Shown here piece after piece: positions 6,835-61,446 of a stretch of DNA of 64,000 nucleotides (the stretch's first letter is position 1; the number at the start of each line of letters is the position of its first letter). Below the pieces are notes generated by a model that did not search any database, was not told the DNA's origin, and was given only the letters and a program-made list of their open reading frames with translations. Both the position numbers and the translations under genes were made by a program. Source of the stretch: Mizuhopecten yessoensis (Eukaryota). Location of the stretch: positions 184,201 to 248,200 of the forward strand of contig NW_018408310.1 in the NCBI RefSeq assembly GCF_002113885.1, given 5' to 3'.

Positions 6835-6885
6835 ATGTTGACCGTAATTGCTGTACTCAGTTCTGTCCTCGCTTGCCATGCACAG
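6835..6885 (+). CDS. Orphan signal-peptide exon (MLTVIAVLSSVLACHAQ), probable leader of gene C
   Basis: Acceptor tattttcag|6820, ATG at 6835, 17 codons, donor CAG|GTAGGT, phase 0. Same coding length (51 nt, ending in Gln) as the leader exons of D and E. No DOMON exon found between 6885 and the gene A promoter. Confidence 0.7.
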
Positions 6886-7452
6886 GTAGGTGAATTTCTA
6901 ACGTAACTAACAAGAATCTTATAATATCACCTACAATGTCATTATGGATGGTTTTCTACATCTTACAGCGATCTGGTCAGTGATACATGTTATTATACCC
7001 ATTGCAATAAGAACCTAAACGTAAAAGGTTATAACATCGAAATTCAATAACTCTGTTCTGGAAGGACACCAGTCTATAAAAGGAGTACTACCAGTGTGCT
7101 TGCACAACTAGACAGATTAAATCAATGGGCAGTAACATAATCACAGAATATTAGTTATACCAAAGGAGATAGGACAACAAAAAACCGACTTCTTAGCAAC
7201 TGCATTATGGTTTTTGAGACCAGTGGCAAACCTTTTGCATCCACAGCGAAATAAGTGTAATGATTCTTTATTTCCGACTTTCAAAGATATCCCCTTGTAG
7301 TATTTTACATGCCCATACACTATTTATATAACATTGATATTCATTTAGTATTTTACATTTAAGATTGTTACAGGTTGGCAGCAAGATAATTGACTTGTAA
7401 ATGCATTTGTTCAGGTATTAATTGACTTTGTTCTAGCAATATTTCAGACAGG

Positions 7453-7953
7453 ACATCTAGCAAGGGTCCGAGATAAAGGTAGATTTACATCTAGCAAGGG
7501 TCCTAGATACAGGTAGATTTACATCTAGCAAGGGTCCCAGATACAGGTAGATTCACATCTAGCAAGGGTCCCAGATACAGGTATATTCACATCTAGCAAG
7601 GGTCCCAGATACAGGTATATTCCCATCTAGGAAGGGTCCCAGATACAGGTAGATTCACATATAGCAAGGGTCCCAGATACAGGTATATTTACATCTAGCA
7701 AGGGTCCCAGATACAGGTAGATTCACATCTAGCAAGGGTCCCAGAAACAGGTAGATTTACATCTAGCAAGGGTCCCAGATAAGGTAGATTTACATCTAGC
7801 AAGGGTCCCAGATACATGTAGATTCACATCTAGCAAGGTTCCCAGATACAGGTAGATTCACATCTAGCAAGGGTCCCAGATACAGGTAGATTTACATCTA
7901 GCAAGGGTCCCAGCTACAGGTAGATTAACTTCTAGCAAGCGTCCCAAAATACA
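7453..7953. repeat. 34-bp minisatellite, ~15 copies
   Basis: Unit ACATCTAGCAAGGGTCCCAGATACAGGTAGATTY, with starts at 7453, 7487, 7521, 7555 and onward. Confidence 0.95.
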
Positions 7954-8738
7954 TTGAAAGAATATATTATATTGTTCAAAAGAAGATTCAACCTATCAGA
8001 CAAACTCAAGAAATAGTTACTGATTTTAACTTTTTATTACGTGTCATGTAATGACTTATGATTTCAACCGTATAACAAGTACCAGGACATTGACCCCAGT
8101 AATACCTGTCATTACCGAAACTGTTACTTAATAGAAAGAAAAACAAATTTGAATTACGAAAAAAACTATCTGCAATCTGTTGACAAAGTGAAAACTTCGC
8201 CAACTGGTAACTTGGGTTTTTTATGAGATATGATATACTCATATTGGATTGATTCTTCTTTTTGTATAAAATACACCCCTTAACTGATTTCCTGACTGAC
8301 CCAGCTGCATTTTGCTTTTATTTGTCCCTATTCATTTAACCTGTTAAAATACTTTAAAGATGAAAATCAAAAATAGATATTCTCCAAACATCTTATATTA
8401 ACAGTGTGTAAAATCACTGAGGTTTCTATATGAACAACAGTATTTAAACAAAAGCTATTGAATCTATAAGGTCAAACATTTAAATTAACGAGAAATATAC
8501 ATATGGTAATATCTAAAATAGTACACCGGGGTTAAAGTATTGATAGGTTGATGGGTATTATCACTTCAGTATAAGGTAGATTGGGGAAGGTGTCTGTATG
8601 TTTACCGAAAATAGCAGGGTAAACTGAGATGTCCAATCAGTTTTCTTACTAATATGCGTTGAGAAAATTATGCTTAAATTGGGACGTTTACCTAGCATAC
8701 TCTGTCTTCATGTAAAAAGAGTGGTCAGTCTTAAATTT

Positions 8739-9082
8739 GGAGGCACGGTAGTCTAGTGGTAGGGCGCCGGGTTCGCGATCGAAGGTACGCGGGTTCGAGT
8801 CACGGCATGGCACTGTGTTGTATCTTTTAGCAAGATACTTTACTCCGCTTGTTCCAATCTACTCAGCTGTAAATGAGTACGTGGTTGGGCAGTGCTAGAA
8901 TTGTAGAATGCTAGCTGTGAGTGCCGAAATAGCAGTACCGGGGGGTTGAGAAAGATATTGGCTGGTTGCAAAGGCCCTATCACCACGGATAATAATATGT
9001 AAACCGCTTTGAGACGACCTACGAACTAGGTTGTGATAAAGCGGTATATAAGAACCTCTAAATATTATTATTATTATCATTA
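8739..9082 (+). mobile_element. Full-length tRNA-derived SINE
   Basis: A box TAGTCTAGTGG, B box GGTTCGAGTC, central ACTCAGCTGTAAATGAGTAC, (ATT)n tail. Partial copies at 18855-18985 and 48910-49091. Confidence 0.85.
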
Positions 9083-9889
9083 ATTACTGAGCCGGAACAT
9101 TCCTCTCAATATACCGACCTGGTCGGACAGCTGTGTATACATCCGTCTTAGTAAAGTGTTACAAACGATAGCCTCATAGACACCATTTGAGATAATAACG
9201 TCAGGTTAGTAGACAAAAACGTGATGTCAAATGAATACTCAGTTTAATTAGATACATGTTCTCACTTAATTTGTCCTTATGTACATACATCATTTCCTGG
9301 TGGGATGTTACTCTTATGTGTATGCAGAGACAGTTGATTGTTATACAGGGATAACTTAATGATGTCTTTATATAATGTCCCTTCAAAAAAAAAATCAAAG
9401 CAAAAGGCTATACGTTATGTTACTGGTAACTTTTGTAATTAAAAGATATTATATTTTCTTAAAGTGGTGTCAACGTGATAAGAAAAACTGAAAAGAAAAT
9501 GTGCATTTCATTAGCTATTCCTTTCCGAAAACATGCTACGCAAGTCTGCCTAAACCTCTAATAAATCTGCAACACTCATCCCGTCATTCTAGCATTATGT
9601 GTGTCTGTATGTGTGACATGCGTGATACCAAAAATCTATTATTTATCAATTAAATACACATAGTTTTAACATTTAATTATCAGAAATGCAGTAAATATTT
9701 TCAACTTAAAAACAAATGATTTCGACACCAAATAGACTCGAGACCTTTTCCAAACTAAATGCGTCGACTGGCAATATGCAAATCGTATGTAGCTTCAGTT
9801 AACTCTTGTATAAATTTAAAGATATTAAAAGTCAACAAAGTCTTCGAATATCTTCTAGTTTTTAAGTTGTATGCTAAAAGCATGTTTAT

Positions 9890-10033
9890 GATTGACGTTG
9901 GAAACGGAAATATGAACGGAAGTTTGTCTCACTTCGGAAGCTGCTTTTGTCATAACGGTATTTAAGTGTAGGCTGCTAATCTGTATAATGCAGTGTGTCA
10001 TATAGCAGCGAAGAGGAAACGTAAAAAGTAAAG
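9890..10033 (+). promoter_or_regulatory. Promoter and non-coding exon 1 of gene A
   Basis: Strongly conserved with 19558-19701. GGAA motifs, TATTTAAG at 9959, donor AAAG|GTAGGT at 10033. Confidence 0.65.
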
Positions 10034-10375
10034 GTAGGTATCATACATAAACTTCTAAACATTTATATTACGCTTGACATATTAGCAAAGGAATCTCACT
10101 TTAGAGATGCTTGTAAAGTGTTTTTAAACATTTTATTGTCATAATAAATTCAAAATCAAAACAGAATATCATTAATCTGAATATTGTACGGAGGTCGACT
10201 TTGAAACGCCCAATTTTTGACAAAGTACCTTGATTGGAAACGTTTCAGGAAGGCAGACAAATTAAATAATCATGGTAAGAGGAATGAAAACTATGAAGTA
10301 TGTGGATATATTTTTTACGGTAATACGATTAAACGAATTTGCCTGAAAAATTTAATAGTGAAACCTTTGTTGCAG

Positions 10376-13300
10376 ATGTTCCAAGCAACCATCATTGTCG
10401 CATTGACGTGTCTTCATCTATCGGTACGTATCAGATGTGTTGTTGTGTTAAAAATATTATATTAAGTCGATAAGTGGGCATCTTTATCATTATCAGGTTT
10501 TTGCTAAGGGGTGATTTTTTTCTGTCGAAGAAAACATTTTTCTCATGATTATCATATATAATATTAACAATATATAACAACAAAATATCAACGAAACTGA
10601 GTACAGTTATATTCATAACGAAATGCTGAGGCATAGACATAGCTTGAGCTGGTTAAAGTTTTGGTATTTTCTCCATCTCTTGAATGATATAATGTAGTTT
10701 AATCAGAAAAAAGGGAATTGTGATCTTTTCGAAAAGATTATAACGAAGGTCATTGCTCTCGTTTAATATGGCAAATATCCAATGATAAAACATGGATAAC
10801 ACACAGGAAGTCATCAACATGATATGCACGTATTTCCGCATACCGACATGCATTGCCATAGAAACCTAGTGTCTCATGTTGTTAATGTGAATACGATTCG
10901 GATAGTGTGGATATTTTGTCAATTTGTATTGACTAAACAATCGCGAAAGAAAACAGATACGGATAATATTACACTATAAAATGCAGAATTGAATATGCAA
11001 AAAGAAAATGCAAAATACAAAATACGATAAGAAAACGCCAATATTTGCATCTGCAGGCATATCCAATATGTTACCTGGTTCTAAGGACCACATAAGTAAC
11101 GTTATGACGAGGCGTCTGTTGTCCTTCATCTTTCTGTCTTCAGTCGTTCATTCGAGATTTCCATAATGATACGATTAGTGCTTAGTGCTTTTCATCATCA
11201 TACGATAAGCGCTTAGTGCTTTCCATCATGATACGATTAGTGTTTAGTGCTTTCCATCATGATACGATTAGTACTTAGTGCTTTCCATCATGATATGACT
11301 AGTGCTTAGTGCTTTCCATCATGATGCGATAAGCGCTTAGTGCTTTCCATCATGATACGATTAGCGCTTAGTGCTTTCCATCATTATACGATTAGTGCTT
11401 AGTGCTTTCCGTCATGATACGATAAGCGCTTAGTGCTTACATCATGATACGATTAGTGCTTAGTGTTTCCATCATGATACGATTAGCGCTTAGGGCTTTC
11501 CATCATGATACGATTAGTGCTTAGTGCTTTCCATCATGATACGATTAGTGCTTAGTGCTTTCCATCATGGTACGATTAGTGCTTAGTGCTTTCCATCATA
11601 ATACGATTAGTGCTTAGTGCTTTCCATTATGATTAGTGCTTAATTACACGTGGATCATCCCCTGGTGAAGGAAATTTAATGTTGAATAAGGAAACGTATG
11701 GCCGTCTGAAGAAGGGTAAAGAGGTGAACACTCCTGAGTGAATGATGTTTTCACCTATTCCGTCTTTGCGTATTGCAGAGTTATCTTCTCTTGGGAGTAG
11801 GTATTGATTGTTACGTCATTGGTTTGTGTGAGAAAATTACGTCGTTTTCTCAAAAATTGATTACGTTACTCTCACAAACAAGTGACGTAACAATCAATAC
11901 CTGCTCCCAAGAGCAGATAACTCTGCATTACGCAAAGACTGAATTAGGCATCGGGGATGCATTAAACAAGACATTGCTGGAAGTATAAATGAAAGGGATG
12001 TCTCTCTGAGGGCAATGGGATAGGACGTAAATAAATCCTTTAAAACATTTATCCTTTTAACAGAATTGATGATATTCTAATTGCAGTTGATTTTCGCCGT
12101 AATTACTCCCGACCCACAATGTGGAAGTACTAAGGGTTGCTACCCCCCGACCTGTCCCGTAGGTGGATGCAAAGATTTTCACCTTCGCTGGGAGGACGCT
12201 GCGGAATACATAAGGTTCAAGATGGTGGCTTCAGTTCCATCAACGGGGAACGTCTGGGCAGCTATAGGCTTCTCAAAGGACAACCAAATGGTAGGTCAGC
12301 TTAAGTAGATGGGAAAGGATCATATACAGAAAAGAAAAAGAAAAGAAGATTTTGTTTTGTTCTGTTTAACCGCAGAAAAATGCATCTTTATAGTAGTTCA
12401 TTGTTAATAACAGAACAGTGTCAATTTGATTTACAATTTTATGACATGAAATGCTATTAAAGTTGGAAATATGTATATGATAGCGTCTGCCTATTATGAT
12501 ATCTATAGTTATGTCTGTCTGTCTGTCTATGATAATGTCTGGCTATGGATTTGTTTGTCTATGATACAGTCTGTCTATGGTACAGTCTGGCTATGGTTTT
12601 GTCTGTCTATGGTACAGTCTGGCTATGGTTTTGTCTGTATCTGGTAATGTCTGGCTATGGTTTTGTCCGTATATGGTAATGTGTGGCTATGGTTATATCT
12701 TAGGTAACGTTTTTGTTTAGCCATTGTTTTTTCTGTCTATGGTACAGTCTGTCTAAGGTTATGTCTATCTTTTGGTTTGTCTGTCTAAGGTACAGACTGT
12801 CTAAGGATATGTCTATCTATTGGTTTGTCTGTCTATGGTACAGTCTCTCTAAGGTTATGTCTATCTTTTTCTTTGTCTGTCTATGGTACAGTCTGTCTAA
12901 TGTTATGTCTATCTTTTGGTTTGTCTGTCCATGGTACAGTTGGTCTAAGGTTATGTCTATCGTTTTGGTTTGTCTGTCTATGGTACAGTCTGTCTAAGGT
13001 TATGTCTTTCTATTGGTTTGTCTGTCTATGGTACACTCTGTCTAAGGTTATGTCTATCTATTGGGTTGTCTGTCTATGGTACAGTCTGTCTAATGTTATG
13101 TCTATCTTTTGGTTTGTCTGTCTAAGGTACAGACTGTCTAAGGATATGTCTATCTATTGGTTTGTCTGTCTATGGTACATTCGGTCTAAGGTTATGTCTA
13201 TCTTTTGGTTTGTCTGTCTATGGTACAGTCGGTCTAAGGGTATGTCTTTCTTTTGGTTTGTCTGTCTATGGGACAGTCTGTCTAAGGTTATGTCTATCTT

Positions 13301-16273
13301 TTTTGTTTGTCTGCCTATGGTACAGTCTGTCTAAGGTTATGTCTATCTTTTGGTTTGTCTGTCCATGGTACAGTCTGTCTAAGGTTATGTCTATCTTTTT
13401 GGTTTGTCTGTCTAAGGTACAGTCTGTACAATATTATGTCTATCTTTTGGTTTGTCTGACTATGGTACAGTCTGTCTAAGGTTTTGTCTTTCTTAGATGA
13501 CGCTTGTCTTATATTTTGTCTAATAGTGATTTTATATGTCTACGGTAATGTCTGTTGTGGTAACACCAGTCTAATATGTTTTCTATTGATGATATCGTTG
13601 AATATGGTAAGGTCTTTCTATGGTAATTTATATCTATGTTTATTTCTATCTATGACTATGTCTATCTATGGTTAGGTCTGTCTATGGTTATTTCTATCTA
13701 TGATTATGATATCTATGGTAAGGTGCGTCTATGGTTATTTCTATCTATGATTATGTATATCTATGGTTAGGTCTGTCTATGGTAAGGTCTGTCTATGTTT
13801 TTTTCTAAATATGGTAACGTCTTTCATAACAGCTTTATTTGGTTATCTTTCTGTAGAGTAGTGTCTGTCTATCATTGTCTGCCTAAGTTAAGTATACATA
13901 TGGTAACATTTCCAATATCTTTACACTTACAGAAAAACAGTAGTGTGGTGATGTGCAAAGTGGACCCGACGACAGTGGAGATAGGGTATACCGACCCACT
14001 CAAAAACTCCTATGCTGCCTTAAAGGTTTATACGTTAAGAACTTGTTGTATTACATTTCTACACAGATGTATCCACCTTATCAATTAGATATTTTCACTT
14101 TCTTGAGTTTTGAAAAGTAATGTTATCCAAAATGCATTGCATTGAACACTAACATAATTGGGAATATCTAATAGTTATGCATATTTGAATAAGTGATAGA
14201 TAGCAAAATAACGACAAGAAGAATGAGCAATTCAAAACAAGAAAAATGGAGTGCATCAGTCAAAATATGTACTTGGTTTTCTAAGATAAGGTTTTTTGCT
14301 TCAAGATTGTCGAAGCACTGACAATCACCGATAAACTTGAAGATGAAACAGGACAAGATTTGCTTTATGTGATATCACGGTTATGTTAGCTCTGTGCGAA
14401 TTTATCATAGAGTATGTACAGTAGGCGAACGAAGTTTTTATTCAATGAAAACAAAAGTGTCAAGAGAACAGTAATTCTAAGTCAAAATCGATGACATCAG
14501 GGCGAATTGAACCCGACATGTATTGATATGCTAAATGTATGCAATGAAAATATTTTCAAAGACTCGTGACAAAGAAACCACACGTCACCATTTTGATCAC
14601 AAATTCATCAAAATTCCTATTGCACAAGGAAACAGAATATTTCCAAATCAAATAATGACGGCGACCATAAAACCTGGCCTAAATCTCCTCAAGCTGTAGC
14701 TCTCGCACCCTGTTGTAAGTAGGTCAGTAAGCAATCGATAAATTACTATCAAGAATGAGAAAGTATGCGTTCGAAAATTATTCAGCAGTACTTAGAATGG
14801 TGGTGGTGCCTTACAATAATCAGTACCAAAAAGCTTATTTCTTGAAGTCGTGAAGTACTCAATCGAAAAGTCAATCCGAAACGGAAAGACACCAAATCAA
14901 AGGAAAGGCGAAACAAAAAAAGATACGCGTTTTTCTGCACCATATGTGTTAAAACCTTAAGTGAAACAAATCGGTCACTAGCAATCTAAGAAACTGTAAA
15001 TAATCATAATAGCCCCGGCCGTTACATAGTTAGAAGTAAGGCAATGGTTACGAGCGTAATATTTCCTCAGCAAAGGTTGATAGCCTCCACAGTAGAAAAA
15101 TGTGGCCATGTTGTCAATCTGTCATAAGGATACATTCATCCACAACATTATGATAATGAGGACAGGTCGAGTTATCTCCCATGTGGCGTACATCATAGAT
15201 GTCACCACATTTATATTCAGTTTCTGATTAGATAATCTGGTGAAAGGAAATGTGACATGCAAACCCAATGAGCTAGGGAGGCTGGTATTTTACTACTTAG
15301 AAAGAGCAAAAGGGGGGGGGGGGGGCATTCTGTTTTAAGCAAACGAAACGTACATTACGTCGCATATAAGTAGCAAACGAAACGTACCTTAACAACACTG
15401 TTTCAAAATGATCGGTGTTTGAAGAGAAGTTATCGACATTTGGCGCATATAAATAGCATAAATTGAAGTACATTTGTTGTTGCAGACTGTATCCACCCTA
15501 ACCAATGTGTCAGTAGCCCGTAACGGATCCTATATGACGTGTACATTCGCTCGGATCAAGAAACCAACGGAGTTCCCGACTCAGATATTTGCTCTAAACC
15601 AAACCGATCTATATCTTCTGAATGCACATGGACCACTTATAGGTGATAACTTATGAAGAGGAATTGATAAATAAATGCAAATTTAGAAACATCATATTTC
15701 AAATTTCTTTAGTTTAAACAAAACTTTTTAGTTTGAAATTTGACATTAATTTGTAAACACGAAATCGAGCTAGGAAACATATTTTTTTTATTTGATTCAT
15801 CGCCTAAAATGTGACATAAAAATTACTTGCTCGTGGTATGTTTTCTATTTTACTGGAGCTATATTAGTATTATTGAAAATCAAAAAAAAGTAATTTGTGA
15901 TTTTTATCAATTTAACTGGTTATATTGTCTCTGTTAATAATACTATGATTTTGTAATGGTGTCATTTCCAATCAAATGTTAATTAAAATAATGTCTGATG
16001 TTGATGCGTATGATATCTAATATACTTATTTATTTTTTATTTCAAGACGGCATACCTGGCTATCACAACGCAATCAGGCAAGCAAGCGCGAGCACCCTGT
16101 CGTTCGTAAATATGACCGACACTACTCCAATTTTGCCAACAACTGACGCCCCTCCTACCAGCACTCAGATGGCAACTCCTAGCACCACTCCTGCTAATAC
16201 TGCTACACCCCTGAAAATCACTATTTCGTCCATGTTCCTTACATGTTTGGCAGTGGTCGTCACACTCCTGTAA
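10376..16273 (+). CDS. Gene A: secreted single heme-DOMON protein with Thr/Pro stalk and GPI-signal-like tail (~242 aa)
   Basis: Exons 10376-10423, 12087-12290, 13933-14025, 15486-15642, 16047-16273, all GT-AG and in frame. Motifs CGSTKGC, WAAIGFSKDNQM (axial Met), SVVMC, CTFAR, LNAHG, GYH (axial His), hydrophobic C-terminus. Confidence 0.88.
11159..11642. repeat. 31-bp minisatellite, ~15 copies
   Basis: Unit TTCCATCATGATACGATTAGTGCTTAGTGCT in intron 2 of gene A. Confidence 0.95.
11756..11946. mobile_element. Palindromic MITE (~190 bp, long terminal inverted repeats), copy 1
   Basis: TATTCCGTCTTTGCGTATTGCAGAGTTATC... pairs with ...GATAACTCTGCATTACGCAAAGACTGAAT. Second copy in the opposite orientation at 16463-16654. 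Confidence 0.85.
12500..13800. repeat. Satellite of 16-bp monomers with a 48-bp higher-order unit (intron 3 of gene A)
   Basis: GGTACAGTCTGTCTAA-GGTTATGTCTATCTTT-TGGTTTGTCTGTCTAT, period 48 in 12741-13480, with degenerate 16-mers on either side. Confidence 0.92.
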
Positions 16274-16462
16274 AGAGAATAGAACTGGTTTCTATACAAA
16301 CAGCTTTTAAATCCAGTGTATCTTGGTCAAATTGAAACGTTTCATTAGTATAAAGTTATCTATAAATTCTAACGATGAAGTTCGTCAAATACCAAGGAAA
16401 AGATGTCTGGAGCAAAATAAGTCTTTCCTCTATTTCTGATTAAGAAATATAATGCATTTAAC

Positions 16463-16654
16463 TATTCCGTCTTTTTGTATTGCAGAGTTATCTGCTCTTG
16501 TGAGCAGGTATTGATTGTGACGTCATTTGTTTGTGAGAGGATAACGTCATCAAATTTTGAGAAAACGACGTAATTTTCTCATACAAACCAATGAGGTAAC
16601 AATCAATACCTGCTCACAAGAGAAGATAACTCTGCAATACGCAAAGACGAAATA
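16463..16654. mobile_element. Palindromic MITE, copy 2 (3' of the gene A stop)
   Basis: Near-identical reverse complement of 11756-11946, TA at both ends. Confidence 0.85.
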
Positions 16655-16761
16655 CAAAGTATTTTCTACTGTCATCTAGTACTCTTTCGCACAGTTTACA
16701 AAGCGTTGCTAGATAATACAATGTCTCGATACTGAGCATGAAAGACATGCAGTATGTTATT

Positions 16762-16921
16762 TAAGGAATGATTTTTATTTTTTCAACATTTATGAGGTCA
16801 TAACAACAATGGGTTTATGGACATATTGAATGAATCGCGTTAGCGATTCATGTAAAATATGTCCAAAAACCCATTGTTGTTATGACCTCATAAATGTTGA
16901 AAAAATAAATATCATTCCTTA
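16762..16921. repeat. ~160-bp near-perfect palindrome
   Basis: TAAGGAATGAT...ATGAATCGC-GTTA-GCGATTCAT...ATCATTCCTTA; ~78-bp arms with few mismatches. Confidence 0.9.
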
Positions 16922-18854
16922 TATTTACATTGACGAATCCTTTCAGTGGATCGATATAACAACGAATAAAACAAATAAACAGGGTTTGTTCCTGCTTATA
17001 CACGGGTGCAACGCAGTGGCGAGAACAGTGTTTTTTCGCGGGGAAATGTGACACTATCGTGAGAGATCTTAGCAACCGTCAACAACAATAACACAACAAA
17101 ATGTAGTTCCATATTCAATGTTTATTTGTAGCACAGGACACGTGAATACGTGGATATTTCACAAAGCACAGTTCAATAATATTTTAAGATGTAAGAATTA
17201 AGCATCTAGGTCGGTCGTTCCGAGTGAGTAGTTTTTGTAGTGTATTACTACGCAGTGTGATCAGGTTACTATCAGTTCCCACGTGCTGAGATTCTATGAA
17301 CACCTGTGTTATGCATTTATGAATGTAATTTTTGTCAATGGGTCTAAGCATACAGAATGTAAATATATACACATGTAAAGCAAATACAGAGGTTATTGGT
17401 ATCACACGGATGGCCGATATATGTAATATATCTTTTTATATTCAGATGAACACTTTTTCATTAAGACAATAAGCTATTTCAGAATGGATAAACATAATAA
17501 TTTCCAAAACTTATAAACAGATAATAACCATCATTCATTAATCTTAGCGTACGCATCTAGTTAAAAAAAAATAAAAAAAAAATTTTGTTAAGGCTTATTT
17601 TAATTGTATGTACATTATATCTATACATGTATAATTTAACAAGATAGTTGTATTTAAAGATAATTTCGTATTGATTTTTTCAGCCTTGTTTACGTTAGTA
17701 TGCATTGCTTATTAACAGTATGATATAAGTGAACATTATCATTGTGCTTTGACACGGTAAAAAAATCCCGCGCGACACCAGGTTTCTTTTTGTGATATAG
17801 GATCTGGTATTTCATCAAGAGGGGTGAGAGGTTGTCAGGTATTAGAAGGTGAGGGGCATCTAAATACTATAAGCCCAAATAAAATTTGGACTGAAATACC
17901 TCCTATATTCCTGGACCGATCGTTTGGGGTTTTCGTTCTCTGTTTTTAGGGAATTTCTGGGGATTTAAAAGCCAGGACACAGGGACAATCTCCGAAAGAA
18001 CTTCATATGTTTCCAATAGAGAATAATTTCCGTTCACACTTTTCCTTTTAACACGACAGCATTAAAAGACACATCATTCTGTTTTGTTAATTAATCATCT
18101 ACGTGTCATTGATATATCTTAGTACGTATCTGGTAAAGTATATAAATCATATTAAGGGGCGTACATGTGTGACATTTATCAATATGCATTCGTTGAGAAT
18201 ATACGTCACACTAAGGGGGTACATGTATGATAGCCATGAGTATGTATTAAGGGGAGTATTTATATCATAGTTAAGAGATATGTGTTTTTGAAAGTATTCA
18301 AAAGTTTTACTTCAAATGTTGCATTTTGACACAGTATTAGCAGTGAAAAATTACTTAGTTCAACTTTCAAAATTTTAAATATCAATATTTTAAAGACTAC
18401 TTTGTTTTTTGTTCTCCTTCAACAGCAAAGATAATGGGTTTTTTTATGTGAAAATCCTTTGAAATACATGTTCACATTACAAAAAGACTACATTTATAGA
18501 CAAATGTGTACCTCATTTCAGCTCGCATGTGCAAGAGACGGTGTCCAAAATTAGAGTAGGCGAATATGAAAGCATTTGATTGTTCAATTTTACAAATGTT
18601 AGAGAAGTATAATATATTGTATACCTATTTACTCATTCCAGTTTGTCGTCAATACTAAATGCCCAATAAGAGCCATTCCTTGTGAAATAACGTCCTTTTT
18701 TTAATCTTCGAAAAAGCATGAGACATGGCGGTTATAAAAACTGCCAAGATTATTACAATTATGGTAAATATTTAATAACAAGTTTGTCTGTATGTTTGAC
18801 ATGTCACATCCCATCCTCACGTGATGAAAATCTACATCAACATGCTCCCTAGGG

Positions 18855-18985
18855 AGTTGAGAAAGATATTGGCTGGTTGCAAAGGCCCTATAACCACGGA
18901 TAATAATTTGTGAACCGCCTTGAGAAGACCTCCGAACTAGGTTGTGAGAAAGCGGTATATAAGAACCTCGAATTATTATTATAAA
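18855..18985 (+). mobile_element. 3' fragment of the SINE family at 8739-9082
   Basis: GTTGAGAAAGATATTGGCTGGTTGCAAAGGCCCTAT...TATAAGAACCTC-(ATT)n matches 8945-9075. Confidence 0.85.
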
Positions 18986-19557
18986 CAGCACATCAACTTA
19001 CCGAAAAGAAAACTGAAACTGAGTGAAACATTTAGAAACGAGTGCTTAAATAGAACCTAACTATAATCCCATTTTATGAAAATGCCATAAGAAGAAAGCA
19101 ATAAATAATATACAAGATAACATGCATTTCATTAGCTTTTCGTTTCCTAGATAATGCTCCTCGATTCTGCCTCAACCTCAAAACCTCATACAATTTTGCT
19201 TCGCCTGTCCCGTCATTCTGACCCTTTGTTTGTCTGTAGGTATGCACAATGTATGTTATGGTTTTATTAAAATGTGTGATGTAAAACAAATGCTCTCTTC
19301 TGTTATCAATTAAGTACACAACGATTGAATATACAGACTGGATGTTAATATTTTCAAGCTAACAATGAGTTCAACATCAAAAGGACTCTCTGGATTTGTT
19401 TGCAAAACTGAATGCGACAAACTTACAACTACAACGTGCAAATCAATCTTAGATTCATTGTTCATGCTTGTGTTTATTTGAGTCTGACAGTGTCTTGAGT
19501 TTCTATAGATTTACAGTCATAGTTTAAGTTGTACTTTTAAAAAAAAAACATTTATAT

Positions 19558-19701
19558 GATTGACGTTGGAAACGGAAATTTGAAAGGAAGTTTGTCTCAT
19601 TTCGGAAGCTGCTTTTGTCATAACGGTATTAAAGTGTAGGCTGCTGATCTGTCTAATTCAGTGTATCACATGGCGGCGAAGAAGGAACGTAAATAGTGAA
19701 G
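19558..19701 (+). promoter_or_regulatory. Promoter and non-coding exon 1 of gene B (GC donor, uORF)
   Basis: Homologous to 9890-10033. TATTAAAG at 19627, donor GAAG|GCAAGT at 19701, uORF MAAKKERK* at 19670-19696. Confidence 0.6.
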
Positions 19702-20076
19702 GCAAGTACCCTCCTGAACCATTTATTGAATGAATAATACATTTTCGACATGTAAGCTAAAACAATGTTTTTCAACTTATTTAGTAAGCTATTTATTCAA
19801 TTTCTACTGTGATAATGAATGAAATACAAAGGCAATTTTTAAGTTAAATATTGTACAAGATGCCGACTTTGATATGCCCCGTGCTGTATCATGTACATCT
19901 GTTGAATCGGGTCCGCTTTTCTGAAACGCTTTAAAAAGGCAAATTATATTATTTTGGTAGACAAAAGGAAAAAAATCGTTTGAACTATAAAGATTTTTTT
20001 TATTGTAATACGATTAGACAAATTAAGCTGTTTTCGATTTGACAAATTTAAACTTACTCATTTCAGTTTGTTTCAG

Positions 20077-30120: not shown

Positions 30121-30211
30121 TGCATTAAGGTCATGGTCCATGCGCATTAAGATCATGGTCCAAGTGCATTAAGATCATGGTCCAGGTGCATTAAGGTCAT
30201 GGTCCAGGTCA
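30121..30211. repeat. 22-bp tandem repeat, ~4 copies
   Basis: TGCATTAAGRTCATGGTCCAnG repeated. Confidence 0.85.
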
Positions 30212-50670: not shown

Positions 50671-52000
50671 TTGTTCGTCTCTCGAGTAGAGATCGGCTGA
50701 TGCATATTAATGTTAACTGAGAACTGGTTCAATTGGTATGCTTCATTAATATTCTTTCAGCGTCCTGCATGGATGACGTTCATGTGCATTCGTCACGAAA
50801 ACTGAATATGTTACATCGCCACAGTATCTTACCTGTAAGCATGCACTGATTTACCTGTGTATCTACTGGACAGACAATGAGCTGGATTAATCGACAGGAT
50901 CCATTGCCTTCACACCGTGTGTTCACTTTCTAAATCAATCATAGCCATGTATACATGTATGATATTTTCATATCATTAAGGAACCCATTTCATTTTAAAC
51001 TTTTAAACTTGGGTAAACACTGTAGTGCACTGGAGTAAAAACCGTTATGCACTGGAGTTTACACTGTAGTGCACTGGAGTTAACAATTCAGTGAACTGCA
51101 ATGCATTTCAGTGTTTTGTCTAGTGTACTAGATACCAAGTTAAGTTTGCTCCCAACTGTTGGTACCTGGTGATAGTTTCTCACAAGAAGAAATATGTGTT
51201 TTAACATCGTGACCATGTTGTTATATTGGCAAGTCTATATGATAAAGGAACGTTGATGTTCTACACAGTTTGTCTTCTTTTAAAAATGAGCTTGTGTTTT
51301 TAAGAAAGATACACGACAAACAGCCTAACACCACTCAGGTGTTTACAGCTTTTAATTTATAAAAAAAAATAAGTTTTAAAGTACAAAACTAGAACAGGTT
51401 GATACATCACATGTTAGCATATAATTTAACATTGAATGATTTCCATTAGAAATGCATACATGAACACGGATGTGCAATGATATAACAGTTGACGGTTTAT
51501 TGATAATGAGTTTCTTGATAATCTGAATAATCGGGTGTACGTAATGAAATACTTTCTGTAATATGAATATTTTAGAATCATGTTACCGATTCTTAATCAT
51601 TTTATCATTATCAAAGTTTGTTTCTGTTATAAATTTGACAGCAGTGGTATATATTGAACTTCTATGATCAGAATTTAATTTGTGTTTATCGTCTATAATA
51701 TTTCAGCTTCAGGGAACATTCGACTTCGTATCGCACGTTTTTGAACAATTTAGACCTCAAATAATACCATGTCAATATGGCATTAAAATGTAACAGACTC
51801 CAGCGTCTGTTCTAAACGATGGACGAACGGACGGACACAATATCAAATAAAGAATATAAGAAATCTAGTTATTCGTTATCGTTCACAGAATGTACTATAT
51901 ATTCTAGAACCTTATACATTATATATAAGATATCTACTAGTGTGTTAAATGTGTACTCTCAAGAATGAAGCATACAAATAAATATGACTTTTTAATTTAG

Positions 52001-54427
52001 AACATTGGTGTGTCGGCGGGTAGTATATTGTTTGGACAATACCGCCCCGTTCTCGGGATCATGTTCACTATCAGTCAGTGGTTCATGTACATATGTACAT
52101 ATGTGTGTGTCACCTCCGTCACCCGCATGGGAAACCATTAATAACAAACAGACATATATGAATACATAAAAAACCTATTTTGTGAATAGTTGGGAAATAA
52201 ACTGCATCTGCATTGTTTGAATGACTTCACTTTGAGCAATATGTTGTATTCGCATTTTACCAACAACATCCATATCAGCTCAGTTATAATTTCACTCTTC
52301 GAATTTGAAATCATGTTTATTGTATACAACGGAAAATATTTCCCCTCATGAACTAATCTCTTTTATTTCGGTGGTTGAAAAGGGATAAAATGAAAGTAAG
52401 GCGACTATTTCGAGATATAATCATAACGACACACTTGGAATATGAGCTCTGATTTTGTAGAAACTAGAATATATCACTGTTTTATCAATTAGTTAATGTT
52501 CTTAGTAAGTGACAGAGTGTGGATTATGCTTTAACATAAGTTTGTATAAACAGTTACACAAAAACATGTCTTCAAATCCCTTTGACGTATGCTAGGTGTG
52601 TTAATGATATAGAGTTAACTATTGTCACTCAGACCGTTGGGGAATTCGCTGATGGCCATCCAACATTTGTTAATGTGATTCCCGTCTGTGGTTTTACTGT
52701 AAATGTACCACAATCGCTTCTTCCCCTCTACACAATTAACATTACATAAAATATAAAACACACACACACACACACACACACATGCAAACATTGTGTCTAC
52801 TGTAAACATTGCTTCGTTTATTTCGTAGATTGGGTTTGTTATAAACATTGGTTCGTTCATGTTTCTGTGGAATGAGTGCTCAAATGTTGTAGGAAATAGA
52901 TTTACATTATATAAAAAATCTATTTAATTTTACACATATTGTTTCTTGTGAACGTAGACGTACATTTTACAAAAAAATACCTTAATACCTCATTGGATTT
53001 CACTTAATTAGTTTGTCTGTGAACTAGTGACCGCAGAAAACTTGATGGCATTTCTTATTATTTTATTATGTTTTTTAACATGATTGATAATTATTTGTTT
53101 CGTGATGTAATTATCATTCATAGATATCATCTTGACATTAAAGATTTGAATCAATATTAAAACTACAACGTTTTTGCAGTTGATGAATATGATTAATATC
53201 TTGATGGAGTAACGAGTAAACATTCTCATTTAAAAGCATAAATGCATTATCACAGGTAAGAAGTAGTACATAAAAACATTCAATATTCATGTATATATTC
53301 CAACAATAACAATCCTTTTCAGGGACTTATCTGAAAAGTCTCAAGCAACCGGAAGTACGTCTGGTGTTGTGATTGCATACCTTTGGGTGTTTATGATTGT
53401 GAACATCGTATTGGAAGTATATCTGTTAACGAAAAGAAGGGAATCACGTATGTTCGTAACACAGTAAAAATAAATGTGTCATTCGATAAAAAAAAGTCTT
53501 ATGTTGCCGTTAATGTTGATTAAGTGTGATTTCTCTTTCCTTATGCAGATACATCAATTTAACATAATCAATATGCGGAATAATGAATGTTTATGATGTA
53601 TGCAACAGGAGTTGGTTGATACGACAAAATTAAATCCAGAAGAACGTAGATTTTAATATTAATAAGAGATACGTATACAATATCACCAGGAACATATGGA
53701 AATACATCTATATTGATTGATTGTTTTGTAATGTGATTTGAGTTTTGGTTACACAGCATATCTTGCTAGTGTATATACGCAATTAACACTTCCTGTACTT
53801 GTAACTCAACTGAAAAGGACGTTCTGCAGACATCGAAATTGTCAATCAAGGAGGGAGGGAGTCGCTGACACCGGAAGGGCTTCGACAGGTATTTCTACGC
53901 TATTAGCACACTTACATATTACGACATCTTCGTTAATGATATTCACTTTTGTTTCTGTAATGACCAAGTAAGGATAATGGAGCGGTTATTTAAACATATC
54001 GATACGTTTCTATTATTATCACCTTCAAGAATTGTAAACATAGACACAATACGAAAGTTCTTCGATATTTCGTAGTTAAATGGCAATCGGGTTAAAGATA
54101 TTTGCAAAACCTCAATGAAATACCATCATTCAAAAGTGTTTGATCAAAATGTCATGTAAACCTGTTTTTTTCCAATCGGAGTAAGAATAACCATATAACT
54201 ATAGAAGGATTATAATCGTTATTACTTTTGTAATGTCAGCTTTGTCAAATGAAAATAAAAGTTGCAATGGGAACAATTAAAGATATGTAAAATGTTTTAA
54301 TATTGTTACCGACAGATTTTCTGTTTTACAGACTGAGGAATTTGCAGTAAAGTGTTTCTGCGGGATCCAGATATTATTGATGTCTGTCTTCGCTCTGACA
54401 CTGCTTGTCCTCATAAACAGTGGCTGA
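52001..54427 (+). pseudogene. 5'-truncated pseudogenic copy of the cytochrome b561 3' exons of gene C
   Basis: Exon at 52001 has YH>YR (heme His lost) and a 1-nt deletion. The PTMAIFRC exon is absent. Acceptor CAG>CAA at ~53303 plus indels. The last exon 54332-54427 is still open. No 5' exons. Confidence 0.88.
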
Positions 54428-56514
54428 TGCCCGTCTTTCTGCACGGGAAACGTCTGGTGGTCTCACAAGAGTTTGAGATCCAGCCGATGTTGCAAAGCCA
54501 CGGTACATTAAATGCTATCATGAATATATAATCGTGACGAAAATTAACATATTTCCTACCTGGATATTCTAAAAATATATTCATATATAATTTGGTTAAG
54601 CATATGATAGAAAGAACCCCTATGTGATCTTCTTTAATTTTTGTCAAATTGATATATGGAACATGACAGTTGCTACATATCACATCAAGATAAGCCTTTT
54701 TGATTAGTTTATTATTCCTCTTTATTATTCCTCATCCATGTAAATGAATTATCGTTGTACATTATTTTCCTTATCACATATTCCTTCATTGACGTATGAA
54801 TTGCCAAAATACTATTTGCTACTACCATAGCATCGTCAGGACCACCACGAAAGGAGGCTTGACTATGTGGTTCCAGATATCTGTTTCTCTTTACTGTGGA
54901 CAACAGAAGAAACATAATATTATCAGCTGCCCCTATTGTTACAGCAAAGATCCCTGTCTTTTCTGATTATGTATAATTTGCTATTATTTCTGCTTCAATC
55001 CCGATATTTTTTATATTTATAGCTGGTGACACGATCTCTTAATGTAAATGTTATGGTATTAAGTAGACAGATAAAAGATAACATTTTGTTGAATTTGTTT
55101 GCTGTGTAATTTACATAAATTGGTAAGGTGTAATTTGATAGTCAGTTGATTGATTCGTTATACTTTTCTGTTTATCCATACAGGAAACGAACAGTTGATT
55201 GCTTTCAAGTTTGTGTTAGGACCCAACATTGTTTTCGTGAAAAACATATAAAAAACATCAAATAAAAGTTCAAATACTGATATGTTTTATATAACGTTCG
55301 TCGTTATCATAATCGAGTTCCGTTGATAAGATGTAAGAAAAGTTGTTATTGAATATCTCGAAATGTATTATTTATTGATATTTCTGCTCCTTCCATTGCA
55401 TTTATTAAAAAATTGTTACGCGGAATTCACGCATTAGCTCGCTATCTAAAAAACATACCTTTAAAAAACAAACAAAACAATGTCATGGTTACTTTTTTCA
55501 GTTAAAAAAAGTCTTAATATTGCAAATCATAATGTAGATCAGTGCTAGAATTAAAAAATACTACTTAGACCAATTCGGGCTCATTATATGTATATCAAAT
55601 AGCTCCATACTTATCACCGTGTAATTTGTTTATGGGACTCAGTTGAATTAACACAAGTGGTAAATAATTGGTTGTAGATAAGCCTTACAGCCCGCCGAAC
55701 TGAAAGCTTGAACTGCATGTCAAAATGTTGGTAATGCTTCGAAATTCCAAAATTTACAACTTGAATAAATATTCTTAAACTTCAGTAACGAGTCAACCTT
55801 GTTGACTGATTTTTTGTAAGGTAAGAAAGGTCTGAATTCAGGCTTAACTGTCATAAAGGCAATGTCCTGATAAATTACCGCCTTGGTGTAGTTTATCGTT
55901 AAATATCTGTATCAAGAGAAATTGTGTAAACTACTAGGCGACTAATATATCTATATCTGTTAGTAAATTATCACGATTCTTTCAGGCTTAACCGTAATTT
56001 ATTTTTATTTTCATTTTGTGAAGAGTTGTCTCCCATGGGTTGCTGTAGCATATGCGTCATTGGAAAAAAAAGAATTTCACAAAATTGAAAAAGACATTTA
56101 AGATATTTATTGCTAATACATGTATTGTAGAGGATTCTTAAACGAAATATAAAAATATTCGTGAATTATTTCTTCAAAAATGTGTTCATCGATAAAATTA
56201 TCCAGATGTAAGGAGTAATTTTGAACATTAACCCTTACAAGGTAGTTTTAAGCGCATCACGGTATGTACTTTGTTAGGCTCTAGAAATTGTAGATATACT
56301 CCTATAGTAAGATATCATAAAAAAATATTATTGCTTAAATGTTAATCAGAACAAATATATATGTATGATGCAAATATATAAAGAAGAAATTGCGACTGTT
56401 CTGACATTGAAATTTGTCCAGGTTTGATCAAGACACAAAAACATGAAACAATAACATAAAAAAGTATGAAAAGTTTCTGCTGAATTTGTGTGCTGACGTG
56501 AAAGCATATTCCTT

Positions 56515-56882: not shown

Positions 56883-57384
56883 TCAATTGTAAAGATCATA
56901 AATGCATTGGAGAACGTACCCGCAATTTAAACATTAATTCATTAATTACTTTGGTACACAATAATATACATACATTTATAGATTCATTTAGTTATATTTA
57001 TAGAGTATACCTTTCGTATCATGCAGATGAAGACGATTCCGGTTTAAACGGCCTTTGTTTTTGCTGTTATTTTTTGACAACTCGTCTTTAGTTACATGTA
57101 GGCGAAATTCCTAGAAATAGATGTAGTCAAAAGACCTAATTATCTTTTTCGAAAGACGCCCAAATATTGGGGTTTATTTATGTTTTTGTATTTATTAATT
57201 ATAATTTTAATCTACCAAATGTATTCCTCCGCGAAATATCAGCGTTATATTGTGTTATTGCGAAACACATTTTTTTGTGCATCTCACTTAACTCTCTATT
57301 AGTATGATTTGTGAAAATGTTTGTTTCCCGTAAATGGTTGGCTGGCAATCTGGTGAACTTTTGGTTCAAATCCCACTGGTAATC

Positions 57385-60300
57385 CTAATGTAGCATATAG
57401 GACAGCCAGGTGCCGATGAGACAAGCGCAGAGGGATACAAATGCTGGTTTTATGTTGTGTCCTGAGCCCGTCATGACAGGATAAGAGTATGAATTGGGGG
57501 AGACTCCTCGGTTGTTGTTGTGGTAAGCAGGTACACCACCTGAGCAAATACGAAACTTGCTTTAGATAATAGAAATATATGTTCTATCATTATATGCAAT
57601 ATACATAATTGGAAAATAACGATATGATTATTGCCATAAAAATAATTTGCGACATGATAGCATGACCATACAATCGTAGTTGGAGATAGCCACAGTAAAT
57701 GCTGATTCTAACAAGAAACTGATTTTGAGATTTGCACTTTTGGTTCCATTTTTTTAACACATTTTAGATATTGACAATAAGTTAATTCCAACAGCTTCAC
57801 TCTTTATTTATATTTTATTAACCCTTTTCTATAGAAAAGAGCTTTAGATCGCTAAAGGTTGTTGATCATATCCAATCATAGAGCGTTCTTACCTCTTACC
57901 GCCCCCCATGCCCGAATCAGGAAGAACGGATCGGTCAGAGACCTAAGTTGAGCCACGTTCCGGATGGGTTTCTTGATTCGATCAAAGGAGCATGTGGTTA
58001 TGTTATTTGTAACAGCAAATGATGTGTTCTGAATTCCATACAAGTCCTGAAAATTGAACGATTATAATTATCACATTTAAAACACTTTCGATGAAATATA
58101 TGTTCGACTTTCAATGTTATTGTATAACTACTCTAGCTATAAATTCCATTACCAATCATATATTTCGAAATGCAGAATCTAAAATAACATTATATAGTTA
58201 TTTAGGTTTAGAATTAGAAGGATTTCGGATTTCACATTCTCACATAACATTTACATATAATGAAAACATGTTGACGTGTTGTGTCACATAGTGAAACTAT
58301 GTTGACGTATTGTGTCTTATTGTGAAGATATGTTGACTTTGGTGATCACTTTGTACCAAACGCTAAATGAATCAAGATTTATCAATATAATTCAGCTCTT
58401 CCACAAGAATGTGCAATTATACTCCAATGATTGCACGATTGATGTCTTCTACATCAACGTCCGATAGAAGAGAAAACCCTGCCTACAGTAAGACGTTATT
58501 TATTATTTAATACACAAAAACTTTCCCTGATCATTTTTATATATATCTATGATTCAGTTTATACTAAATCTTATCGCTGCAGAATCAATATTGAGAATAT
58601 GAAGATCACCGAATTTGTTGTTGTACCACATTGGAACAGCGTTTATATAGCTTTGTATGAATGTTGAATTCAGATAACATCATAACGCTATTACAACGTG
58701 GTGAAAAAACGCCAGGAAAACTTTCATATACAATTTTCTACGGCCCATAAACCAACGTTAGGACGTGACCTGAACACAACGTTGAAGCAACGTTATGTGC
58801 CCACCGGGGAGCCTTGTGGCTGAGTGTATGGTTCTTTAGGTATCTTGATTAAGCAGATATATACATAATAAAGCAGATATTATTTAATATAACTGATAAT
58901 TAGCTGACAAGAAATTGTGTGCACGGCCCTTTTCAAATAAATGTTCATGTCACATCAATATGGATAATAATAGGTTTTACAGCAGAAGCTAAAAGTGCGA
59001 AGGGTTCCGAAAATTGATAAATGATAAATACGTTATTGTATATGTAGAACAACATCTATCGTTGTAATGGTCTCAAAGTTTAGATGTTGTCATGGAAACA
59101 GCGACTCTTACTATATCCATTTTATTCTAGTTATATAGTAAGTGTGATGTTTTAAACGATATGTTGTTACATAACTTACTGTTCCAGGCGCGTATGTGCG
59201 ACCCTGTGTGTATCCAAGCTGTACATTGGCATCACTTCGGCACATCACTATACTGCTGTCCGGCTGGTCAAATAAATAAATAAAACGTCTTTCTGTTTAA
59301 TTCTCAAAGTCTATCCATCAAAAATGTTCCAAAATACAGGGAATGTTTTCTCTGTATTCATTAAATGTGGGATGAAAACCTACACTTTTTTTCCTCACTA
59401 AAGAGTCGTTCTTGTGGGATTACTTAAACATTAATTCAAGTTATCTCACGTAAATACTCTTTCTCTAATTGTGTCATAAGCAATTTCAATTCAAAATTAT
59501 TTTTGTTGTTTTTTTAATCTTGTTTATGTTAAAATTATATCAACATATATGTTTATAATCTGCAACACCAGGAACGCTTACCATAAGACTGTTTCCGGAG
59601 AACCCAAGGGCGATATAGTGCTCGCCTGATGGGACAAATTCCATCTTCATCTCAAACCGCAGATAATCCAAGTTAGTGTTCCACCAACTGATCAGGAAGC
59701 CGACACATCCCCCAACGGGACATTGTGTAGGCCAGCATATCTTAGCTTTTCCACATTGTGGGTCTGGTGGAATTACTCCATTGGTAAGCTAGACATTACA
59801 TAAATAAACTAGAATTAGAAAAGACACCCGGAACTAGCAAAGTCATTAGGAAAACAAACAAAGTTTCTTCGGAGTGGTATTTCCTGTACAATATATTAAA
59901 ACTGTGACGTGTATACGTATGGAGTCTCGAATGTTAATACGTAAAAAAGAAAGCAATTGATATCATAAGTCAGAAAAACGTAGAATGCATAAACAATCGT
60001 TTGCCACACAATCGTATTGATCGTCTGATTTTTGAGGGTTTTTAAAACGACTTTAACATGGAAAAAAAATCCTAATTTGCCAAACATACAACATTTATTA
60101 TGAAATGTTTTATACCGACACATATTTATTGTTGTTATTGTTGCTGTACAGTTAAAATCCTCATTCGCCAACACAAAAATGGAGCTATATTCCCTTCTAT
60201 ATGAAATTACCATTGAAGAAACCCTCTTGAAGAATAAACCTTAAACGCAGTGTATTTTATATAAACTACAATGTTTATTTTATACAAATAAAAGATGATT

Positions 60301-61446
60301 TATTTTCTGTTTACAGGCCTGTCATTAAATTATTACACCCTCATTATATTTTTTATGTTATGATAACACTATAATGGTAAATTTTATGCATTTGATAAGA
60401 AGTGAAAAAGTAAGAAATTTGTTCTAGTGGTGCTAACTATTTCCACTTTATATCTCGTGATAGCACCTATGTTTATTTTTATATCTAGAAGTGATAACTA
60501 TGATAATTTCGGTGTCTAGTGGTGACAACTATTTTTATTTTAATGTCTGGTGGTTAAACCTATTATCATTTTGATGTCTAATAGCGACACCTGTTTTCAT
60601 ATTGATGTCTAGTGTTGACAACTAATTTCATTTTGATGTCTAGTGGTGACAACTACTATCATTTTGATGTCTAGTGGTGACACCTGTTTTCATTCTGATG
60701 TCTAGTGGTGACAACTACGATCATTTTGATGTCTAGTGGTGACAACTACTATCACTTTGATGTCTAGTGGTGAAACTACTTTCATTTTGATGTCTAGTGG
60801 TTACAAATACTATCATTTTGATGTCTAGTGGTGAGAACTACAATCATTTTGATTTTTCCGTAATCATTCTCTTTTGGTCCTTTTATTAAATCATTGCTCA
60901 CATTACAACAATACAAACATGATTCATGTTATAATGCCAAACTTTCAACACACATATGAAATAAATAACTTCTCTAAAAAAACATTACCTTTGTTAAAGA
61001 AATATTTATCATTTTACTCTAAGTATGGCACAGTGTTACCAAACTTGCATAACTGTATTAAGCATACTTTTCATGCATACTTCACAAGTTGGTTAAATAC
61101 ATGATAATGGACCTTTTGATACATGATAATGGACATTTGAATACATAATAATCGATATTTAATTTAATTATATGTATCAGCTCATCTACCAATAACACAT
61201 CGTTTTTGTATTTTACAAATTATGTAAATTTCAAGCAAGTATCGTTCGACACTATTGGAAACTTAAAATGATTTATATATTATATAAAAGAGTTACACTG
61301 GAAAAACTGAGGTTATTTTGTATGTGCAATTACACCATTATGTAATCAAAGTACTGCAAAAATGGATAATAATTACTTGCAAAAAGACATCTTACCTGAG
61401 AGAAGACGCTAGCGATAAGGATACAAATCAGTTTGGTCCACGACAT
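57385..61446 (-). CDS. Gene E: recent paralogue of gene D, single heme-DOMON with GPI-signal-like tail (216 aa)
   Basis: Exons 61446-61396, 59788-59582, 59263-59180, 58046-57893, 57539-57385; same lengths as D, intact splice sites, no stops. YIALGFSGNSLM and AYH retained. Confidence 0.88.
60420..60855. repeat. ~31-bp minisatellite, ~13 copies
   Basis: GATGTCTAGTGGTGACAACTACTATCATTTT in intron 2 of gene E. Confidence 0.9.

Follow-up and report, generated by a model that had tools for sequence, protein, structure and literature searches.

The window analyzed here, a stretch of 64,000 nucleotides of Mizuhopecten yessoensis DNA, contains five DOMON genes, A to E. All five could be rebuilt as open models with canonical GT-AG introns and DOMON exon phases of 0,0,0,1 (Table 1); intactness and phases are as the first-pass annotation had described them. 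The Met/His pair that it had reported is kept in every gene (M84/H174 in A, M84/H175 in B, M80/H169 in C, and M86/H172 in D and E), and C is indeed the only one of the five that runs into a b561 region with four His residues (H201, H242, H284, and H320). Remote searches with the window sequence were run exon by exon; full-length searches, fold predictions, and scans used the database proteins P0008 and P0009 (identical to A and B), P0152 (C), and P0050, and joined spliced models served for local alignment, trees, and dN/dS only. The stretch has N letters at positions 24928 and 50471.

TABLE 1 Features of the DOMON/b561 locus, in positions of the window
Feature	Position	Strand	Description
C upstream exon	6369..6434	+	In-frame ATG 6369 in RefSeq isoform X1; donor 6435
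C signal-peptide exon	6820..6885	+	ATG 6835, 17 codons; spliced to 30965 (RNA, RefSeq)
C first coding intron	6886..30964	+	24,079 nt; same-strand host of A and B
A upstream block	9861..10034	+	Conserved, GGAA-rich, putatively promoter-like; probable 5' UTR exon
A	10376..16273	+	242 aa; exons 10376-10423, 12087-12290, 13933-14025, 15486-15642, 16047-16273
B	20077..27692	+	306 aa; exons 20077-20124, 21923-22126, 25740-25832, 26785-26944, 27277-27692
C other exons, first part	30965-31153, 32939-33034, 34352-34505, 35411-35524, 35915-36030, 36140-36226	+	
61-nt minisatellite in C intron	31415..32938	+	25 extra copies of the acceptor and first 46 nt of the 32939 exon
C other exons, last part	36730-36816, 37919-38018, 38514-38657, 39021-39079, 39548-39643	+	
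D	43848..47519	-	216 aa; exons 47469-47519, 45970-46176, 45575-45658, 44362-44515, 43848-44002
Broken copy of C 3' exons	51841..54522	+	Frameshifts, one His codon changed, one exon missing
E	57385..61446	-	216 aa; exons 61396-61446, 59582-59788, 59180-59263, 57893-58046, 57385-57539

Gene C encodes a product of 430 aa, counted from ATG 6835, in which the signal peptide, DOMON, and b561 region that define it as a CYBDOM are all present. The DOMON matches PF03351 (66.8 bits), has SxDxxMGxD intact, and carries its Met/His ligands in invariant alignment columns. The b561 region scores 18.6 bits against PF03188, under the Pfam cutoff of 23; its four His residues are invariant in nine homologs, and six hydrophobic segments lie downstream of the signal peptide. 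XP_021366791.1 equals our model save for a 27-residue upstream extension and one exon that is 4 residues longer (RefSeq X1 starts the 39021-39079 exon 12 nt earlier). The signal-peptide exon is joined to position 30965 by three RNA reads (run X24) and thus splices directly onto the DOMON exon. A reeler exon for C was ruled out, because a Pfam scan found no PF02014 in C and the signal exon joins the DOMON exon; assignment of the 6835 exon to A as its first exon was likewise ruled out, since RNA reads and RefSeq give it to C. Because this exon belongs to C, genes A and B sit on the same strand within C's 24-kb intron. The 61-nt minisatellite of C is absent in Ylistrum and Pecten.

The four remaining genes encode stand-alone single DOMONs with a signal peptide. 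The models of A and B match RefSeq XP_021366794.1 and XP_021366793.1 of M. yessoensis, respectively, letter for letter; the DOMON is followed by an S/T linker in A and by a long Thr-rich stalk in B, and both proteins end in a GPI-like tail. Each of A and B has a first coding exon and a conserved upstream block of its own, and the block of A has homologues in B (19523-19702), Ylistrum, and Pecten. No promoter homology of the A-type upstream region to the upstream regions of C, D, or F rose above shuffles. In D, a short spacer separates the DOMON from the GPI-like tail. Gene E is a recent duplicate of D (88% amino acid identity; dS, about 0.08), and the broken copy of the C 3' exons came along in the tandem duplication that produced it. 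Checked by hand, the tails of A, B, D, and E have the character first ascribed to them, with a small-residue triplet 25 to 28 residues before the end and an uncharged hydrophobic stretch; nine orthologs checked in the same way have the hydrophobic tail and the triplet, one with a polar 11-residue extension.

A read pile at 28872 to 29235 was rejected as locus expression; it is loose on both sides and is therefore a repeat within another transcript. UniProt A0A210Q5A2, a ferric-chelate reductase 1 that we did not match to any cluster gene, is up 1.52-fold in Polydora-infected mantle (PMC9641012).

The cluster continues past the edge of the window, where genes F and G lie; the location of F in Mizuhopecten is inferred from the same scaffold, neighboring accessions, and synteny. 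At least three b561 genes are present, C with one DOMON, F with two, and G with seven, so that the earlier picture of one b561 gene as the sole electron source does not hold. Stand-alone DOMON genes are linked to b561 genes in four scallop genera, and among the loci examined only Mizuhopecten has B and E, which are extra tandem copies. An A-type gene lies between the C signal exon and the C DOMON in three genera (Mizuhopecten, Ylistrum, and Pecten), uncalled by annotation in the latter two, and its slot in the C locus matches that of DOMON1 in F. Neither the Met nor the His varies in an alignment of 44 DOMON domains or in any ortholog of the stand-alone DOMONs, and ortholog dN/dS values of 0.11 to 0.27 indicate purifying selection. 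Only the proximal DOMONs (C and F-d2) keep the SxDxxMGxD motif intact; A, B, D, E, F-d1, and G have altered versions. The predicted DOMON fold (pLDDT, 91.5) is nearest to the dopamine beta-hydroxylase DOMON (Z score, 14.1) and aligns to the cellobiose dehydrogenase cytochrome domain with a Z score of about 11; PDB sequence searches gave no meaningful match. We conclude that this FRRS1/SDR2-type CYBDOM gene cluster is pectinid-wide and that the window holds part of it. Literature searches found no description of the cluster. It is a lineage-specific family expansion, unusual in form but belonging to a family already known, and its electron-transfer partnership is a proposal.

The DOMON tree places A, B, D, and E with F-d1, the membrane-distal DOMON of F (support, 99/94), and C with F-d2, the proximal DOMON (96/91). 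The four genes nest in the same FRRS1-type family as C, which argues against an unrelated ancient family as their source, and A-type and F genes both have signal exons of 16 codons and a second exon of 204 nt. No conserved phase-0 donor is left in the A-type linker exons. The best reading is that a duplicate of F was divided between two genes: A received the distal DOMON, with an anchor, and C the proximal DOMON together with b561. Such a split would lend fusion-type support to coupling, and host and guest probably go back to one ancestral gene, of which each is a half. In the history that we propose, an F-like gene was duplicated in inverted orientation, and the duplicate would have broken in two. 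Its distal-DOMON exons would have become gene A, which has a 16-codon signal exon like that of F and a linker exon running into a GPI-type tail, and the proximal DOMON and b561 exons would have become C, whose separate upstream signal exon would splice over A and so create the same-strand nesting. The D-type genes would be another 5'-half copy, just downstream of F. Branching among A-type, D-type, and F-d1 sequences is weak (77/35), and one common origin for the DOMON-only genes as a whole is not rejected (P = 0.28), so the C intron may instead have received a 5'-half copy by insertion.

In functional terms, C would draw electrons from ascorbate in the cytosol and pass them through the plasma membrane, by way of two hemes in its b561 region, to the heme of its DOMON, which may then reduce extracellular ferric or cupric ions. 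SxDxxMGxD has been proposed as a ferric site, and CG8399 and SDR2 have ferric reductase activity in vitro (PMC10691727); the plant protein HYP1 is a three-heme conduit (PMC10784544), and AIR12 has heme and redox activity (10.1101/2024.12.25.630297). A, B, D, and E would be b-type cytochromes with a single heme and a GPI anchor, in which the acidic metal-site motif is partly lost. At the surface, they most likely work as one-electron relays or as redox buffers; they are the putative freed equivalents of the distal DOMONs of F and G and may be fed by the cluster CYBDOMs or by small reductants rather than being obligate partners of C. We give this whole explanation, an F-like split within a pectinid cluster with A, B, D, and E as surface single-heme relays or buffers, a probability of roughly 0.6.

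It is rather unlikely that the stand-alone DOMONs carry no electrons and act instead as heme scavengers or as binders of ligands, matrix, or receptors, e.g., in mantle, shell, or defense. Such roles have precedents in FRRS1L, a DOMON-only protein that partners the AMPA receptor (PMC7030922), in the GPI-anchored, chitin-binding Knickkopf (Knk) (PMC4140639), and in FRRS1-like proteins of the abalone shell matrix (PMC6003135). The degenerate acidic motif, the long S/T stalks that raise the domain off the membrane in A and B, and the dN/dS of 0.75 to 0.79 between D and E, which hints at relaxed or diversifying change, fit this explanation as well. Invariance of the Met/His pair among orthologs and the conserved linkage to b561 genes, however, argue against it.

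A more specific proposal, which we consider unlikely, is that a two-DOMON transmembrane reductase was split in scallops into C as the membrane electron source and the intron-encoded A and B as free distal cytochromes with a GPI anchor, with the halves still forming a non-covalent electron-transfer pair whose ratio is set by nesting through the shared locus and transcriptional interference. If true, C with A and B would be a natural test of the role of stand-alone DOMON cytochromes (AIR12 and FRRS1L). The literature examined does not settle which electron partner such cytochromes have, either for plant AIR12 or for FRRS1L-like proteins of animals. The cluster holds the fused F (d1-d2-b561) beside the apparently split A and C, so that one can test directly, against a covalent control, whether a freed distal DOMON is reduced by the b561 module it once belonged to.

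The original proposal, which derived the four small genes from C by truncation of duplicates and joined them to it in a dedicated system of one electron source and four acceptors, is improbable, and its account of their origin is refuted. The exon phases and ligands common to all five genes, their clustering, and the nesting kept in three genera are in its favor, but a clade of A, B, D, and E with C is rejected (AU test, P = 2.7e-7), the cluster has two more b561 genes, and B RNA lies ∼170-fold under C in contig depth (run X2; a small sample), with few or zero B reads in runs X23 and X24, in which C is read. It is very improbable that A and B serve as variable DOMON cassettes for splicing to constant b561 exons of C in the manner of protocadherin or UGT1, with the GPI forms as alternative ends: the strand is shared and exon 4 of A and B ends in phase 1, in which the C 35411 exon starts, but a contig of run X2 splices B exons 2-3-4-5, the sole joint seen from B exon 4 leads to B exon 5 with no B-to-C joint (low-depth RNA, B only), the sole 5' partner seen for the C 30965 exon is 6820-6885, and no hybrid protein turned up in a set of 127 C relatives or in the RefSeq isoforms.

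Among known systems, C shares its DOMON (SxDxxMGxD and Met/His) and four-His b561 region with FRRS1/SDR2 and Drosophila CG8399, which have a reeler-DOMON-b561 architecture. Unlike these, C, F, and G have no reeler, and F and G have two and seven tandem DOMONs. The b561 region of C is ∼44% identical to that of the scallop's own canonical FRRS1; the canonical reeler-FRRS1 genes (P0186 and P0191) lie on another scaffold and group with genes of oyster and mussel in a clade of their own, and C is a paralogue of canonical FRRS1, not an orthologue.

With plant AIR12, which has CYBDOM counterparts (HYP1 and CRR), A, B, D, and E appear to share the architecture that the first-pass annotation had emphasized, one DOMON combined with a signal peptide, the Met/His pair, and a GPI-type tail, as well as accompanying DOMON-b561 genes; the nearest feature neighbors of A include plant DUF568 clusters. 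The scallop forms differ in having arisen independently, from the distal DOMON of an animal FRRS1-type gene, and in being clustered and nested. They match PF03351 rather than DUF568 and nest in scallop FRRS1-type DOMONs, and they are therefore not AIR12 orthologues. Direct electron transfer between AIR12 and CYBDOMs is not shown in the literature examined.

The b561-less architecture is not new in animals. Vertebrate FRRS1L and the stand-alone DOMONs of nematodes and Hydra, the latter including a protein of 198 aa (PMC5080974), lack b561 and are similar in size to the scallop proteins, and FRRS1L and nematode DOMON clusters are the top Atlas neighbors (0.97 and 0.95). FRRS1L is a transmembrane AMPA receptor partner of the endoplasmic reticulum, whereas A, B, D, and E have GPI-like tails; FRRS1L was left out of the tree, and orthology with it is unlikely because of the strong grouping of the scallop genes with F-d1. 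Tail-anchored, b561-less FRRS1-type forms also occur in Biomphalaria (XP_013081117), Bulinus (KAH9515375), Liolophura (XP_064604377), and Rhopilema (XP_065069266). These snail, chiton, and jellyfish proteins resemble A, B, D, and E in combining a DOMON with a hydrophobic C-terminal tail but have separate origins in the tree, with one or two DOMONs and, in some, a reeler.

The nesting itself resembles that of metazoan same-strand nested genes, in which an independent transcription unit lies in parallel orientation in a host intron. Same-strand overlaps are underrepresented and poorly conserved (29% between human and mouse; PMC2330155). The scallop case differs in that host and guest are paralogous and their nesting is kept in three genera, making the locus a clear case of probable gene fission that left a conserved same-strand nested paralogue missed by annotation.

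Within the window, six-frame motif and tblastn searches turned up five sets of DOMON exons and no more. The rebuilt models bear out the first-pass annotation of five intact genes: all reading frames are open, every intron is GT-AG, and the DOMON exons share phases 0,0,0,1; individual exons searched separately matched Pfam DOMON. A search with the exon-2 peptides of all five genes, combined into a profile, recovered Yesso scallop (Mizuhopecten yessoensis) RefSeq proteins identical to the A and B models, and the C model corresponds to XP_021366791.1. The reported retention of the DOMON Met and His also holds, with no variation across 44 aligned domains, as do the four His of the b561 domain in one gene, C, invariant in nine homologues. 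An AlphaFold model of the A domain (pLDDT 91.5) predicts a DOMON sandwich, with the DOMON of dopamine beta-hydroxylase and the heme-binding cytochrome domain of cellobiose dehydrogenase as nearest structures. By hand check, A, B, D, E, and five orthologues have hydrophobic tails, nearly all without charge, that follow a small-residue triplet and so resemble GPI signals; the anchor is putative.

Features of the window and of related loci
Feature	Position	Strand	Description
Gene A	signal exon 10376	+	242 aa
Gene B	signal exon 20077	+	306 aa
Gene C	ATG 6835	+	430 aa from this ATG
Gene D		-	216 aa
Gene E		-	216 aa
Tandem duplication	36570-47532 to 51841-61460		source and copy
Pseudogenic copy of C's last exons	51841-54522	+	
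61-nt repeat	31415-33034	+	26 units
Intronless ORF	3620-4837	-	405 codons; weak 7tm_1 match (E 7e-4)
Read pile	28872-29235		runs X23 and X2
Inverted-repeat pair upstream of D	47741-48210		58 nt, 88%, about 350 nt apart
MITE-like inverted repeats	11756-11944, 16463-16654, 16759-16924		
Minisatellites, A	12450-13815		16/32/48/64 nt
Minisatellites, B	22380-25615		16/32/48/64 nt
Argopecten D-type copies	L002:3924-6291, L002:15087-19790		apparently broken (frameshift, stops)
Ylistrum D-type exon fragment	L007:30622-30800	-	degenerate; directly past C

No nearby first exon was found for C. Three reads from RNA run X24 ending at 30962 run on into the end of an exon at 6820-6885, and RefSeq likewise joins this exon to C. 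Thus, C is a reeler-less signal peptide-DOMON-b561 protein whose 24,079-nt intron contains A and B in the same orientation; this same-strand nesting, tested here, is confirmed. Both A and B possess a 16-codon signal exon of their own, with a conserved GGAA-rich block upstream. The corresponding C intron holds an intact A-type gene in Ylistrum balloti and one with all five exons in Pecten maximus, both absent from the annotation; Argopecten has an A-type transcript. In animals, such same-strand arrangements are under-represented, and their conservation is poor (PMC2330155).

The earlier proposal that A, B, D, and E are truncated duplicates of C fails on phylogeny, a forced clade of these genes with C being rejected (p-AU 2.7e-7). 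In a careful tree of 43 domains, which leaves out three near-identical repeats of the multi-DOMON gene G, distant taxa, and FRRS1L, the A-type and D-type genes form one clade (99/94) with the distal DOMON of F, a gene with two DOMONs plus b561; C joins the proximal DOMON of F (96/91). An 80-domain quick tree is in accord. A-type genes occupy exactly the position that DOMON1 has in F, with the signal exon on one side and the proximal DOMON on the other, and share exon-1 and exon-2 lengths with F. Most simply, an inverted copy of F would have split into A and C. The tree gives no firm branching order among A-type, D-type, and distal F domains, which leaves insertion of a 5'-half copy as a possible alternative. 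The A-type linker exon retains no conserved phase-0 donor that could restore the two-DOMON form. The conserved nested arrangement probably arose by fission.

In Ylistrum, the cluster runs G (-; 1580 aa, multi-DOMON), C with A in its intron (+), D (-), and F (-; two DOMONs plus b561). D-type genes directly follow F in Pecten and Argopecten, Pecten G has seven DOMONs plus b561, and Mizuhopecten F lies outside the window, on the same scaffold and with a neighbouring accession number. A recent tandem duplication produced E, bringing along the pseudogenic C exons. D and E differ by a dS of about 0.08, and their dN/dS is about 0.75-0.79; between orthologues, every pair with measurable dS is under purifying selection (dN/dS 0.11-0.27). 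The two apparently broken Argopecten copies, on either side of an intact one, suggest that D-type genes undergo rapid birth and death. Ylistrum carries a degenerate D-type exon fragment.

Each unit of the 61-nt repeat contains the splice acceptor of C's 32939 exon together with the first 46 nt of that exon. AG is kept in 22 of the 26 units, and 23 have a GT 24 nt in, which would allow in-frame microexons; any upstream acceptor read through to the true donor leads to a stop. The last copy is the one used in RefSeq C, and neither Ylistrum nor Pecten has the repeat. Related minisatellites fill the intron after exon 2 in both A and B and are therefore probably older than the A/B duplication. The intronless ORF has 77-78% DNA identity to a syntenic stretch in Ylistrum and Pecten with no called gene listed, just upstream of C's annotated upstream exon in Pecten. 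The heavy read pile was rejected as locus expression, its ends being loose on both sides, as for an interspersed repeat in another abundant transcript.

CYBDOM proteins take electrons from cytosolic ascorbate, hand them via two b561 hemes to a Met/His DOMON heme, and reduce ferric or cupric ions (PMC10784544; PMC10691727). The proposed ferric site, SxDxxMGxD (PMC10691727), is intact in C and proximal F and altered in A, B, D, E, distal F, and G, a pattern consistent with a relay or buffer role, and not that of a terminal reductase site, for the distal and freed DOMONs. That F joins an A-like to a C-like domain would be Rosetta-stone-type support for a functional link. Unequal RNA levels, compared for B and C in runs of unspecified tissue, speak against a tight pair: in run X2, contig depth, a poor measure, is 1068 for a C exon versus 6.4 for spliced B, the latter on par with intronic contigs; X23 and X24 have C at low depth and few or no B reads, and neither gene is read in X20. 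At this depth, none of the runs examined gave a hybrid splice from B to C. A split yet still coupled electron-transfer pair is unlikely. P0001 (Pecten), P0002 (Solemya), P0003 (Amphiura), and P0032 carry 6-8 Met/His DOMONs in tandem, in most cases on a b561; such arrays have expanded independently in several invertebrates and are candidate extracellular multi-heme wires.

Literature searches found no description of this cluster or its conserved nesting. C is a reeler-less CYBDOM paralogue of FRRS1, not its orthologue. A, B, D, and E resemble AIR12, a GPI-anchored, redox-active single-DOMON heme protein (10.1101/2024.12.25.630297), in design but not by orthology. Stand-alone animal DOMONs are already known from FRRS1L, nematode clusters, Hydra (PMC5080974), and the GPI-anchored Knickkopf (PMC4140639), and tail-anchored FRRS1-type proteins lacking b561 have separate origins in snails, a chiton, and a jellyfish. 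Hence, the suggested AIR12/CYBDOM-like rebuild is not unique but one instance of a recurrent theme.
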